Notes: a model not told the origin generated them from the letters alone. Shown: positions 21,401 to 62,401, counted from the stretch's first letter. The stretch: DNA of 64,000 nt from Ginglymostoma cirratum (GCA_024137785.1 JAHRHZ010000003.1:9574897-9638896); one strand, 5' to 3'. Program-made: numbers and translations.

Positions 21401-24400
21401 TACTTTATATTTGAAAAGAACAACACACTGCACAGGAGATAACAAGGTGCAGAGCTAGAAGAACACAGCAGGCCAAGCAGCATCAGAGGAGCAGGAAGGC
21501 TGACGTTTCGGGCCTAGACCCTTCTTCAGAAATGAAGAAGCTGTCCAGGAGCTGTCCTGCTTCTTCTGTCCAGAAATGATAACTCAGTGTCTGGTTCCTA
21601 TGGTTTGTAAGTGTAGTTTCTGGTTTTGCAGCAATTTACCAGTATCTTTGGCGTTGGTGTGAAGACAGCTGATAAGTGGTACAGAGAGGGACTGCGAACT
21701 CTGCATGAACTGAGAGCATCAAAAATACCACTCACAAAAGAACAAGAAGCAGGTAATGAAGTTGTGGACAAAACAATAATTTAACTTGTTGCCTTTTAAG
21801 TTGTTCACTTTACTCAAGGTCATGCATAATTGTTTAGTCTATCTGGTAAATTGGAACTGTGTTCCCAGCAAAAATCAGTTTCATCAGGACAGACAGGAGG
21901 GAAAAAAGGAATTGGATGCAAGTTGGGACATTTTACAGTCCATTTTACTGACATTTTCGTGAAGGTAAATTATGCACTTGTGAACACCGTGCAATTCTAA
22001 TATACTTAAAGTTTACACTTGTGGTGCACTTCTCTTGCCTTCTCCTGAACTTGGCAATTTTTCTCTACATTTTTGGAATGAGTGACTTTTGTTTCAGTTT
22101 AGTTCAACAGATGCCAGCAGTGCTTTGTTAGCTTGTGCCAAAATTCGCCTCAGATCTGAGGGTAAGTTTGCTACTTTTGTTGGAGAGCATTTGGAGAGCC
22201 AAACTTGAGCCTGTCTGTAAATTATATTCACCAAGGTACACATTTGAAAAGGACTGAGTTGGTGTCTTAGACTTTATAAAATGCCTTTAGTCTGTTGCAC
22301 TCTGCTAAATGCTTTTGATGGTGAAAATCCAAAATTGATCAAGAATTCTGAGAACGTGTTCGTCAATCTCAACAAGATGGGGACTGAGATATAGATTTTG
22401 AGACTATGTTTAACCGTAGGGTGTGGAATTACAGAATTAAGTTGAAATGGCTGCAGCTCTCAAACTTAATGTAGTACGGAGAAGTTAGCTCAGATTCAGA
22501 GGATTATAGGGTACACATGTTGAAAGCCTGGATGAGGTTGCAGAAGTTGGGTGAAATGAGCTAAAGGTTTTGGAGTTGAAGACAAGGATTTTAGAATGTG
22601 TGTCCTTGGAAATAAGTATTGAAGGTAGAGGAAGGGAGTGTTTATAGTGACTTAACAGAGTGTTCCAACTTCAATCAGAATTGAGATTTGCAAATTGAGT
22701 ATTGCTTGGAGTCAAAGCATGAATAAGTTTGGACCTCAATTTGCATTCAGAGGCTTTTTAGAAGGGGCAGCAACAAAAAGTGCACTTCAATGGAACTTGT
22801 AACACAGAAAAACACGGTCGTAATCAGGCTACGATCAACATGGATAATTTCAAGTCCAGGAGAGCAAGCTTGGATCAGTTGTCACATTTTTTCTGTATCT
22901 TTAGAGAGGTTCCATAGATAGTTAATGAAGATTGAAACTGAGCTGGAGCCAAAGCAAGTGATGTTTGATGGGCTAAATAAGGTTAGGTTGAGCAACATGG
23001 TTATCAAAAGAGACTTAAGAGTGGACAGGCATGGATGGAGAGACTGAGCATTAAAGGAAGGGATGCAGTTCCAGCCATAGCAGATCATACTGTGGCAAAG
23101 GGAGTTGTGGCATGAGAAGCTGGAATTAAGGAATGTAGATTTCACAGAAGGTGATAGGGCTGGATGAGTGGAATCATAGAATCCCTCCAGAAGCAGGCCA
23201 TTCATCCCATGGAGTCAACACTGTCCCTCTGAAGAACATCCCACCAGATTCTCAACCTGTAACCCTGCATTTTCCCCTGGCTTATCCACCTTGCCTGCAC
23301 ATCCCTGGACCCTACGAGGCAATTTATTTGGGCAATAGATTTCAACAAGAGGACTGAAAGTTTGGCTTTGGTATGGTAGGGGAATGGAATAGTGAAATCG
23401 AAGTGGCTGAAAGGCACATGGAAATATTATGCAATATTATTTTCCTCCACTGAAGATGCCCTGCAATGTAACTGTCACTTTTGATGCTTCCAACTACCAA
23501 TGTATGTCAATAAGGAGCTGGAAAAAGGCTCTGGAGTTAAAACAAGAAATTCTGGTTAAAAAGAAACTTGATTTCAATAATATTTCAAAAATACTTGGAA
23601 TCCCCTGCGAAGTATGTACCTGTTTTTGAATAAAAATGTCCTTTGTTTTACAGGCTTACTTTATTATGAAGACCTCATTGTCCCAGTAACAAGGACAGAG
23701 GCAGATTCAATCAGGAAAATCGTTGAAGGAGCTGTACACAGATTTCTACCTGCTGCAGTTATCAAGTTAACTGGTGGTTTTCGAAGGTTAGAGCACCAGT
23801 TTTACGTTTTATTATTTAGTTCTGTTAACTTAAGCTCATCTTTGTAAAAGCCTGAAACTACTGAGAAGAGTTAAGACAAAAGAATGTTTATATTAGAGAT
23901 AATAGGTACTGCAGATGCTGGAGAATCCGAGATAACAAGGTGTGGGGCTGGATGAACACAGCAGGTCAAGCAGCATCATAGGAGCAGGAAAACTTGACGT
24001 TTCGGGCCTAAACCCTTCATCAGAAAATGATGATGGGTTTAGGCCCGAAATGTCAAGAATGTTTATATTGTTGAGAAACCTAGGTGACAAGCTAAGGCTA
24101 TTAAATCAGGATTGTAAACAAGGGAAGGGACAAGGTAAATTAGTAACTGGATTTTAGGTTTTTGAATTTTTTTTAAAGAGTAGCGGCATTGACCAATTTG
24201 AAAGACTTGTCATAATTATTTGTCCATCTGGAGCAAAATGGAAGATTTTTTTTTTCTTTTGTTCAAAATTCTTGGCTGAAACTGGGTTTTAGCACGAGTA
24301 TTTTACTTACAAGTCAGACATTATCCCACAAATTCGAGAAAGTCGGGGGCAGAGCTGAGTATGGTGGCCATCACCAAGGAGAAAGTGCTAGAAAAACTGA

Positions 24401-27400
24401 ATGGCCTGAAGGTGGATTATATAACCTGGACCAGATGGACGACACCCCAGAGTTCTTAAGGAGATAGCAGAAGGGATAGTGGGAGTGTTAGTGGTGATCT
24501 TTGAGGAATCGCTATTGTCAGGGAGGGTCCCAGAGGACTGGAAAATCGCTAACATGACACCCCTGTTTAATAAGGGAGTCAGGCAAAAGACAGAAAATTA
24601 CAGGCCGATTAGCCTAACCTCGGTTGTGGATAAGATTTTAGAGTCCATTGTGAAGGATGAGATTTCTGAATATTTGGAAGTGCATGGTAAAATAGGTCAG
24701 CACAGCTTCATCAAGGGGAGGTCATGCCTGACAAATCTGTTAGAATTCTTTGAGGAAGTAACAAGCAGTGTAGACCGAGGAGAGCCTATGGATGTTGTCT
24801 ACCTGGACTTGCAGAAGATGTTTGACAAGGTGCCGCACAGGAGGCTGCTCAATAAGGGCCCATGGTGTTCGAGGCAATGTACTTGCATGGGTAGAAGATT
24901 GGCTCTCTGGTAGAAAACCAGAGAAACTTCTTTCACCAGAGAGTGGTGAATCTGGGATAAAAGGTCTTTCTCAGGATGGCAGCTGGTGACAAGTGGTGTT
25001 CTGCAAAGGTCAGTGTTGGGGCCACAACTTTTCACTTTATACATTAACGATCTAGATGAAGGAACTGTGGGCCTTCTGGCTAAGTTTGCAGACGATACAA
25101 AGATAGATGGAGGGACAGGTAGTATTGAGGAGGTGGGGAGGCTGCAGAAGGATTTGGACAGGTTAGGAGAGTGGGCAAAGAAGTGGCAGATGGAGTACAA
25201 CGTGGGCAAGTGTGAGGTCATGCACTTTAGTGAGAAGAATAAGAGCATGGACTATTTTCTAAATGGGGAGAAAATTCAAGAGTCTGAACTGCAAAGAGAC
25301 TTGGGAGTTCTAGTCCAGGATTCTCAAGGAAAACTTGCAGATTGAGTCTGTAGTTAGGAAGGCAAATGCAACTTTGATATTTATTTTGAGAGGACTTGAA
25401 TATAAAAGCAGGGATATACTACTGAGGCTTTATAAGGCTCTGGTCAGGGCACATTTGGATATTGTGTGCAGTTTTGGGCCACATTTCTCAGGAATGATGC
25501 ACTGGCCATGGAGCGGGTTCAGAGGAGCTTAACATATGAGGAACGTCTGAGGACTCTGGGTCTATACTCGATGGAGTTTAGAAGGATTAGGGAGGATCAA
25601 GTTGGAACTTAGAGAATACTGAATGGCCTGGACAGAGTGGATGGTGGGAAGATGTTTCCATTGGTAGGAGGGACGAGGACCTGAGGGCACAGCCTTAGAG
25701 TAAAGGGAAGACCTTTTAGAACGGAGATGAGGAGAAACTTCTGTCACCAGAGAGTGGTGAATCTGTGGATTTCACTGCCTCAGAAGGCTGTGGAGGCCAG
25801 GTCATTGAGCATATGTAAGACTGATTCTTGATTGTAAAGGGGATCAAGGGTTACGGGGAGAAAGTGGAAGGGTGTGGTTGAGAAACTTAGCAGCCATGAT
25901 TGAATGGCGGAGCAGACTTGATGGGCTGAATGGCCTAATTTCTGCTGTTATGTCTTATGGTCTTATTGAGTTTCCTAGTCGAAAAGCAGAAGTCTGTAGG
26001 TCTTGAAAATCTGAAGTAAAATCAGAAAATGCTGAATATACTCAACAGGTTAGGCAGCATTTGTGGAAAGAGAAATAGACTCAACATTGCGGATCAATGA
26101 CCTTGCATGAGAATTGGGAAAAGTTACAGATGCAGTCGTGTTTGAGCAAGGGGTGGAAGGGACAAGGACAATGAAAGGTTTCTGGGAGGGGTGCCAGAGA
26201 AGCTAGACTGAGGAACAGAAGAGTGAGTCTTACAGGACTGAATAAAATGGTACCAGTATGGAAAGAAACAAAACTGAGTTCGATTTAATGTAACGTATTC
26301 ACTATTCACAATGTCATCTCCTTGACATTGGGGATATCAAATGCAGATTGGGTGAGCATTTTTGCAGATGGAATGGTGATGTTCTGCATTGTGACCCTGG
26401 ACTTCCAGTCACCTGTTATATTAATTCTCCACCTTACCTTCATACTGACATCTTGGTCCATGCCTTGCTGTTGGTAAAGCTCAATGTAAACTTGAGGAAT
26501 CAGACCCTAAATTTTAATTGAACTCTTTCGACCTTCTGGACTCAGCAATTAATTGACCAATTAGAGGTGGCAGAGGTGGATACAACAGTAGTGTTTAAGA
26601 GGCATCTTGGCAGATATATGAATGGGCAGGGAAAAGAGGAATGCATAGAGGCAGTTTAGAGAGGCAACATGTGTCAATACAGACTTGGTGGTCCGAAGGG
26701 CTTGTTCCTGTGCTGCACTGTACTGTGCTTTGTTCTCATGTCTGACTGTAAACTCTCCCTCTCCATTTTGTCTCTGTCTCTTTGCAGGTTTCAGATTTTC
26801 TCTTACTTTTGCTTTCAGACAACAGCAGTCTTGTTCTTGGCACTCTTGTTTGATTGTTTGTTTTTGCCACTGTTCCTTTGTCATCAGATTGTCACCATCA
26901 GATAGGAACCAAACACTACTGTATTAACCTGACCCAAAAGAAATGCATTTGAAAACACCACTATATTTTAGTCTGTTTTTACACTGTATTCCTGCAGCAT
27001 CCCCGAGAGATTTTCCCATTTATCTTGAAGAACTTGTTTTCTTGTTAATTGCTTGTGTTCATGTCTGTAAACATTGTGATTTTCAGAGGAAAGGAGTGTG
27101 GTCATGATGTTGACTTTCTCATAACTCACCAAGAAGAAGGCAAGGAACAGGGTCTTCTTTACCAAGTGATTAACTGGATGGCTGCCCAGGTATGAAATGG
27201 ATATAATTAATTGCAGCAATTCCTAAAAGATAGTTTCGACTCAGTCCCCTCAACTTGGAAGTAACTCAGCTGATGTGATACGTGTTGTCCTCACGTATGC
27301 CAACTGAGTTGCATAAATTAATTCCAAGAGGCTAATCAACCAAAGCAGTTACTATCTCAGTTTCTCTTTTGAGACTAAGCATGACAGCAAGCAAAGGCAG

Positions 27401-62322: not shown

Positions 62323-62401
62323 GTCACAATTAAACCTTGGCATTCTATATTTCTTTTAGTGTAAATCTTTTTATTTTGCATCTCAATTTGTAAATTTTCA
62401 C

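Follow-up and report, generated by a model that had tools for sequence, protein, structure and literature searches.

Very short, probably Penelope-derived insertions carrying minimal hammerhead motifs in a 64-kb stretch of a shark genome

We have analysed a stretch of 64,000 nucleotides from Ginglymostoma cirratum (GCA_024137785.1, JAHRHZ010000003.1:9574897-9638896; hereafter the whole stretch is called the window), in which short dispersed repeats of three sequence families, A, B and C, occupy about 15 loci in total, i.e. approximately one per 4 kb. With a probability of roughly 0.7, we regard these units as dead-on-arrival, very short 3'-terminal retro-copies of Penelope-like retrotransposons (PLEs), in which a hammerhead ribozyme travels as a passenger. 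Each copy would span the element from its minimal hammerhead down to the region where its reverse transcription starts. Judging from their sequences, three copies carry an intact minimal hammerhead ribozyme (min-HHR) motif, which we consider real and of the kind known from other animals.

An initial annotation of this DNA had listed 13 copies and had divided them into three families. Self-BLAST, sequence alignments and nhmmer profiles found a real repeat at 13 of the 13 coordinates and bore out the division at every one of them, and a profile search added two family-C-like loci that had been absent from the list, namely the pair at 43719-43914 and the copy at 46760-46834 (Table 1). Family A comprises eight loci with 11 arms, whose pairwise identity is 79-98% (median 87%) and whose profile matches in the window have nhmmer E-values from 1e-14 to 9e-30; its alignment reveals two subfamilies with diagnostic changes. 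The two loci of family B display 76-87% identity. Family C, with five loci, is old: its identity has fallen to 56-70%, yet the copies at 19912, 25982 and 45183 are still matched with E-values of 1e-27 or better. The family C profile also picks up copies of family A (E-values from 2e-5 to 1e-3), hence these two families are distant relatives. The length per arm is ~50-135 nt in this collection.

Table 1. Short repeat units of the three families and the PLE reverse-transcriptase remnant in the window
Feature	Coordinates	Strand	Remarks
A1, family A	1..68	+	Truncated by the edge of the window; GUC cleavage triplet at its start; short 3' end
A2, family A	5303..5393	-	5' truncation inside helix II, hence without the CUGANGA box; short 3' end
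Family C solo unit	19912..20009	-	Core G12 changed to C; starts 4 nt upstream of CUGA
A3, family A	21435..21540	-	Intact min-HHR 21506-21529; short 3' end; 8-nt inverted stub 21533-21540 at the 5' end
A4, family A	23896..24057	-	Intact min-HHR 24000-24023; long tailed 3' end; 30-nt inverted arm 24028-24057
Family C copy	25982..26113	-	Tailed 3' end; core heavily mutated; abuts the 3' end of an unrelated LINE
Family A head-to-head pair	27919..28138	both	Left arm tailed, truncated in helix II; right arm full, G12 changed to A, short 3' end
A6, family A	34466..34543	-	Tailed 3' end; truncated ~55 nt downstream of C3; abuts another repeat
Family A head-to-head pair	41016..41183	both	Left arm short, truncated at +55; right arm full, tailed, with decayed core
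Family-C-like head-to-head pair, old	43719..43914	arms 43719-43790(-), 43815-43914(+)	Profile E-values 1e-09 and 3.6e-22
PLE reverse-transcriptase core, frameshifted	44288..44982	+	Aligns to residues ~378-592 of ~920-aa relatives
Family C copy	45183..45278	-	Core A9 changed to G; antisense to the reverse-transcriptase remnant
C-like copy, decayed	46760..46834	+	5'-truncated at the GAAA box
Family B solo copy	53383..53503	+	Long 3' end; mutated core, without CUGANGA
Family B head-to-head pair	62034..62322	both	Left-arm min-HHR 62080-62104(-) intact; right-arm core 62116-62140(+) with one helix II mismatch; right arm with 37-nt tail
A8, family A	62171..62261	+	Lies within the right arm of the pair 62034-62322 (family B), as a nested insertion; 5'-truncated at the start of helix II

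Solo units as well as pairs are flanked by target-site duplications (TSDs) of their own, in agreement with the earlier proposal that they were inserted as short units. The duplications of 8, 10, 12 and 12 bp reported previously hold up within a full range of 8-15 bp: 8 bp at 27919 (ACAGTCAG), 10-12 bp at 41016 (GTTCTTGAAC), 12-15 bp at 23896 (AATGTTTATATT), 12 bp at 62034 (GTCACAATTAAA) and 10 bp at 19912 (CTGGCTAAAC, positions 19902-19911 and 20010-19). At 23896, 27919, 41016 and 62034, and also in the old C-like pair 43719-43914, two arms of unequal length are joined head-to-head at their hammerhead (5') ends; in the pair at 27919 the arms are 94% complementary. The 3' region is common to all arms and the variation lies at the 5' end. 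Every family possesses two alternative 3' ends, 33 nt apart in A, 37 nt in B and ~36 nt in C, each of which sits at a short repeated motif. No tandem array of family units was found in the window by TRF, and no tRNA-like sequence, of the sort expected at the head of a tRNA-derived SINE (short interspersed nuclear element), was found there by ARAGORN.

In three of the four complete head-to-head pairs (27919-28138, 41016-41183 and 62034-62322) one arm has the tail of 33-37 nt and the other is without it, which hints, as far as so few pairs (n=4) can tell, that the two DNA strands were primed from two different start sites of reverse transcription. The short inverted arm 24028-24057 terminates either exactly at the predicted cleavage site GUC/AAG or 3 nt beyond it; the AAG also belongs to the TSD. 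This is a single case, which may be a coincidence.

The anatomy described above is that of PLE insertions in published work, which is what supports the PLE derivation put forward in the initial annotation. Craig et al. 2021 (PMC8557442) reported PLE insertions with heavy 5' truncation, an inverted 5'-truncated copy at the 5' end and an optional tail of 30-40 bp, which is often confined to one end. According to Frangieh et al. 2024 (PMC11167929), the purified PLE protein cleaves and extends both DNA strands and prefers AT-rich targets, reverse transcription begins inside the RNA, at two neighbouring sites that lie downstream of the hammerhead at a distance of ~85-120 nt, and the ribozyme is dispensable for insertion. 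The units in the window resemble these insertions of endonuclease-containing (EN+) PLEs (PMC8557442, PMC11167929) in their heavy 5' truncation, inverted 5'-truncated copy and 30-40 bp tail, as well as in the two adjacent start sites of reverse transcription ~70-120 nt downstream of the hammerhead, the AT-rich targets and the extension of both strands. They differ from them in that only the last 50-135 nt are left and that the 5' edge of the ribozyme is a preferred end point of the truncation; besides, the window holds no intact open reading frame (ORF) or pseudo-long terminal repeat (pLTR).

Following the published PLE model, we infer both the copying enzyme and the order of events. The RT/GIY-YIG protein of a PLE, which combines a reverse transcriptase (RT) with a nuclease, would nick the target with a stagger, thereby giving rise to TSDs of 8-15 bp, and the cDNA would begin at one of two neighbouring internal sites of the PLE RNA, yielding either the short 3' end or the tailed one that is 33-37 nt longer. 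Only ~100 nt would be copied, up to the 5' edge of the hammerhead, after which both DNA strands would be extended, or the cDNA would copy back on itself, to produce head-to-head arms joined at their 5' ends. The hammerhead itself would be a passenger inherited from the pLTR/ORF junction of the parent element.

Along the sense strand the units present, in this order, CUGANGA, one bulged base, helix II, GAAA, a self-complementary tetranucleotide and H. A strict descriptor (CUGANGA, an optional bulge, helix II of at least 4 bp, GAAA, self-complementary ANNU and then H) matches three sites in the window, 21529(-), 24023(-) and 62104(-), compared with a mean of 0.003 over 300 dinucleotide shuffles, so that the motif earlier ascribed to the best-preserved copies is indeed there. 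A fourth core, in the right arm of the family B pair, has its conserved positions intact and one mismatch in helix II. The conserved min-HHR core (C3-A9, G12-A14, A15.1-U16.1 and H17) is intact in these four cores (coordinates in Table 1), while in all arms outside them it is mutated or 5'-truncated within the motif; inspection of all family C copies in the window disclosed no intact core among them. A covariance model built from ten cores detected no further hammerhead family in the window.

The same ten cores were aligned for an analysis of covariation, in which they represent only three families (lineages) and the structure was derived from the very sequences that were compared; for these two reasons we take the result as support for a ribozyme structure rather than proof of it. 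The proposed pairs form in 92% of the alignment cells, compared with 15-51% when the 3' partners are slid, both partners vary in five of the nine pairs, and the covariation score was not attained by any of 500 shuffles. For helix II the proportion of cells that pair is 95%, and two of its four pairs vary in both partners, so that the earlier statement that each family has its own stem II which still pairs is reflected in covariation at the level of three families. Examples of compensatory changes are G-C/A-U and U-G/G-U/U-A in helix II and CG/GC/UG in the centre of helix III, the palindromes of which read ACGU, AGCU and AUGU. Helix I comprises only 2-3 bp, yet it also co-varies between families.

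Motifs of this kind have been defined as min-HHRs in the pLTRs of PLEs, with a bulged base and a weak helix I, occurring solo or as two close motifs on opposite strands, and Cervera & de la Pena 2014 (PMC4209133) counted thousands of solo min-HHRs per genome that they considered 'probably related to truncated PLEs'. The units in the window share with the metazoan PLE motifs of that study the CUGANGA...GAAA core, the bulged base before helix II, the short and poorly defined helix I, and, instead of a helix III loop, a self-complementary ANNU (with H after it) that presumably pairs in dimers; they are likewise mostly solo, sometimes arranged as two close motifs on opposite strands, and there are several families in one genome. 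Their helix II has 4-5 bp as opposed to 6-8 bp in Schistosoma and Drosophila, and cartilaginous fishes are outside the genomes described (PMC4209133). These likenesses support the earlier view that the units carry, or once carried, the minimal type-I hammerhead with a palindromic helix III.

The hammerhead is not maintained in the inserted copies, which evolve as neutral DNA. The intact motif is kept by three of ~20 arms, the remainder being truncated or mutated, frequently through loss of CpG sites in the core, which also accounts for part of the mutations in family C; in family A the truncation lies inside helix II in three arms and ~55 nt downstream of C3 in two, and the others have mutated cores. 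Decay by transition has affected five of the 16 CpG sites in family A cores. The catalytic G12 has been lost in two family A arms, where C11.1-G12 became CA (CCCG to CCCA, at 28058-28065 and 41082-41089), and the ACGU palindrome of helix III has turned into AUGU at 24047-24054 and 28017-28024(-) and into ACAU at 41085-41092. Since CpG transitions are seen in other cores, the AUGU of family C may be a decayed ACGU.

The window also contains a frameshifted remnant of an RT core on the plus strand, and the earlier assignment of this sequence (placed then at 44300-45010) to PLEs has been confirmed. Its pieces were searched separately. Pfam returned nothing for the three ORF pieces, and a protein atlas search returned only unnamed eukaryotic clusters, while a HMMER search of representative proteins yielded 403 relatives at E <= 0.001, of which the best named one is a whale-shark predicted protein, which fits the shark origin of the sequence. 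Eight relatives have a length of 750-930 aa, and every one of them has both RVT_1 and, at the C-terminus, GIY-YIG, i.e. the PLE architecture; no N-terminal or EN part of the remnant was detected. The remnant is not contiguous with any unit of family A, B or C. The initial annotation had it sitting 'next to' a family C repeat, a proximity that does not amount to a link: the family C copy at 45183 is ruled out as the remnant's own end by its opposite orientation and by the missing EN part. A C-like unit in the sense orientation, 43815-43914, lies 375 nt upstream of the remnant, and no N-terminal homology was found in the intervening 43915-44288; a single element comprising an inverted copy, a hammerhead and an ORF is not supported here, with the reservation that N-termini of PLEs are poorly conserved.

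The situation in the genome at large was approached with sequence data for 21380-24120, namely RNA reads from a poly-A library and from a second run, together with contigs from this species and from a relative; the raw-read libraries were of the poly-A type or 'other', and a poly-A library would miss small RNAs. Family A bins are covered at 2,300-8,800x compared with ~1-5x in the unique flanks. Of the RNA reads on the element, 95% continue into unlike sequence, and there is no sign of a read-end pile-up or of a unit-length or cleavage-terminated RNA in the RNA reads, from whose poly-A library small RNAs would be missing. Because the reads run into other sequence and their ends do not pile up, the signal points to thousands of copies passively co-transcribed within other RNAs, and not to an RNA of unit length. 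Both 3' termini (23895/6 and 23929/21436) are genuine genome-wide, as their flanks are non-consensus and A/T-rich in the same species and in the relative. Opposite-strand joints occur in RNA reads at several positions near the hammerhead, from which it follows that the head-to-head structure is common genome-wide. On the 5' side, 364 and 92 contigs depart from the consensus at 21532, i.e. 3 nt ahead of CUGA, and other reads continue upstream into a shared G-rich sequence with an agreement of 0.64-0.98, so that a longer form of the element exists elsewhere in the genome. The upstream and downstream continuations, seen as loose ends of reads, have 0 matches in the window. A few read joints 'go back' from 24016 to 23894 and hint at adjacent units elsewhere in the genome.

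Several observations weigh against truncated PLE copies as the explanation. There is no full-length PLE with a family A, B or C end in the window, and the connection to a PLE ORF consequently rests on architecture and not on contiguity; of the expected arrangement near a pLTR/ORF junction, the hammerhead motif is present, the pLTR or ORF start of the same family is absent from the window, and the longer upstream form appears only as loose ends of reads. None of the Rfam hammerhead models (Hammerhead_1, _3, HH9, HH10 and II) gave a match at the gathering threshold or at E<=10, either in the whole window or in a 91-nt slice, an outcome that is to be expected of a motif without the helix III loop. 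For the three intact cores, the minimum free energy structure predicted by RNAfold and RNAcofold is a duplex formed via the near-palindromic helix II and not a catalytic dimer, which we consider uninformative rather than negative. Self-cleavage of these three cores is putative.

A further departure concerns the 5' ends, which are non-random. Family A has four arms extending as far as C3, and all of them end within 7 nt (P ~4e-5 if the stop rate is taken as constant); arms of families B and C behave in the same way, and in the three families, as well as genome-wide, the stops lie 3-4 nt before CUGA although longer forms exist. Simple truncation limited by processivity does not predict such a sharp boundary. 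It is a tentative and rather doubtful suggestion that the mini insertions are discrete run-off ('strong-stop-like') cDNAs of fixed length instead of random truncations. The template RNA of the PLE would then start 3-4 nt 5' of the hammerhead, due to the transcription start of the pLTR or to a processing event, and the PLE RT would start internally ~70-135 nt downstream; initiation at the 5'-proximal copy of the start site would give a fixed-length cDNA, which integrates. In a variant of this scheme, two RT start sites would serve the two DNA strands. If true, the run-off scheme would account for the sharp 5' boundary in three families, and for the thousands of solo min-HHRs alongside few full PLEs in metazoan genomes.

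The same boundary speaks for a non-autonomous lineage that propagates itself (a 'mini-PLE' or solo non-LTR retrozyme), in which short master copies or tandem arrays would be transcribed, perhaps processed by the hammerhead and circularised, and reverse-transcribed by a PLE RT acting in trans. Such a lineage would also agree with the loose ends at 21532 in 364 and 92 contigs with non-consensus flanks, with the very high read and word depth over the unit relative to its flanks, with the diagnostic changes of the subfamilies, and with the joints from 24016 back to 23894, which suggest some tandem or adjacent units. Moreover, Li et al. 2026 (bioRxiv 10.64898/2026.07.22.740005) reported PLE-derived retrozymes in one chondrichthyan, among vertebrate retrozymes that stem from the pLTRs of PLEs. 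Like animal non-LTR retrozymes (Cervera & de la Pena 2020, PMC7229834; Li et al. 2026), the units are short non-coding hammerhead sequences related to PLE pLTRs and are dispersed as 'monomer' or solo copies, introns included. Retrozymes, however, are defined by tandem arrays, abundant unit-length circular RNAs and canonical type-I hammerheads, and we saw neither arrays in the window nor such RNAs in the poly-A reads, which enter the flanks without a pile-up of ends and come from a library that would miss small RNAs. The loop-loop architecture between helices I and II of canonical retrozyme hammerheads is absent as well, the copies do not end at the cleavage site as would be expected of linear or circular monomers, a longer form continues upstream of the hammerhead, and the cores decay neutrally. 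We therefore judge a self-propagating lineage improbable. As each structural trait matches published ordinary PLE insertions and neither a tandem array nor a unit-length RNA in the reads was found, truncated PLE copies are preferred; the initial annotation, which had envisaged mini-PLEs or retrozymes, was right about short PLE-derived units and is not followed as to a distinct non-autonomous population, while its own caveat that the inserts might be extremely truncated autonomous PLEs becomes the better-supported reading, qualified by the non-random 5' ends.

Two further explanations, both very improbable in our opinion, do without PLEs or without a ribozyme. A foldback or MITE-type (miniature inverted-repeat transposable element) DNA transposon with terminal inverted repeats and an incidental hammerhead-like motif is brought to mind by the loci 27919, 41016 and 62034, where long inverted repeats lie between TSDs, and by the fact that Rfam scores the copies only as generic hairpins. 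However, TSDs within one family measure anything from 8 to 15 bp, the two arms of a pair are unequal and their inner junction is not the same in every copy, single arms insert alone with TSDs (e.g. at 19912), and the outer ends fall into two discrete lengths, as in PLEs; no fixed TSD length, conserved outer terminal inverted repeats or matching transposase was found. We have rejected this reading on the variable TSDs, the unequal arms and the solo arms with TSDs. Equally improbable is a hammerhead resemblance that arose by chance in an ordinary repeat, as could be argued from the missing Rfam match, from a helix I of just 2-3 bp, and from the loose pattern CUGANGA..GAAA, which occurs 15 times against 7.8 expected. 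The strict descriptor, on the other hand, finds three sites where 0.003 are expected, and these belong to two families that look unrelated. Three families have 13 core positions in common while helix II and the helix III palindrome co-vary, and the motif agrees with the PLE min-HHR of the literature down to the bulged base on the 5' side of helix II; on the excess of strict-descriptor matches and the covariation a chance motif was rejected.

Elements of this kind are already known (PMC4209133, PMC8557442, PMC11167929 and the preprint of Li et al. 2026). What the window adds is an extension of the association between PLEs and minimal hammerheads to an apparent elasmobranch genome, in which the end-pieces are very abundant. 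These tiny insertions display the hallmarks of PLE integration in miniature, with dual 3' ends, head-to-head arms and variable TSDs, and can serve as convenient natural read-outs of an integration mechanism that is poorly understood. In the annotation of shark repeats they should be classed as PLE ends and not as unknown SINEs or MITEs. The head-to-head copies are also a likely source of false microRNA (miRNA) calls, or of hairpin RNAs when transcribed.

The Rfam scans returned sub-threshold miRNA-like hairpin matches only, and the head-to-head insertions 27985-28100, 41040-41135, 62066-62159 and 23993-24057 are among them as miRNA precursors (e.g. mir-761, MIR528). Introns of a gene for a family-X DNA polymerase (Pol mu/TdT-like) contain two family A copies, at 21435 and 23896, which are antisense to the gene. 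Two exons of this gene, 21631-21749 and 23654-23786 (+), encode a helix-hairpin-helix region and a ..LTGGFRR stretch, and the intron 21750-23650 has GT..AG borders and is seen in RNA reads. L2/CR1-like LINE (long interspersed nuclear element) RT remnants with the FADD motif occur at 24406-25961 and 50355-51898 (+), and also at 2956-3946, 11501-12446 and 58110-58796; they are unrelated to the Penelope units, one of them simply bordering on the family C copy at 25982. Finally, a high-copy repeat at 23177-23400, which is covered 30-200x by RNA reads and very deeply by contigs of both species, resembles 43193-43266 on the opposite strand.

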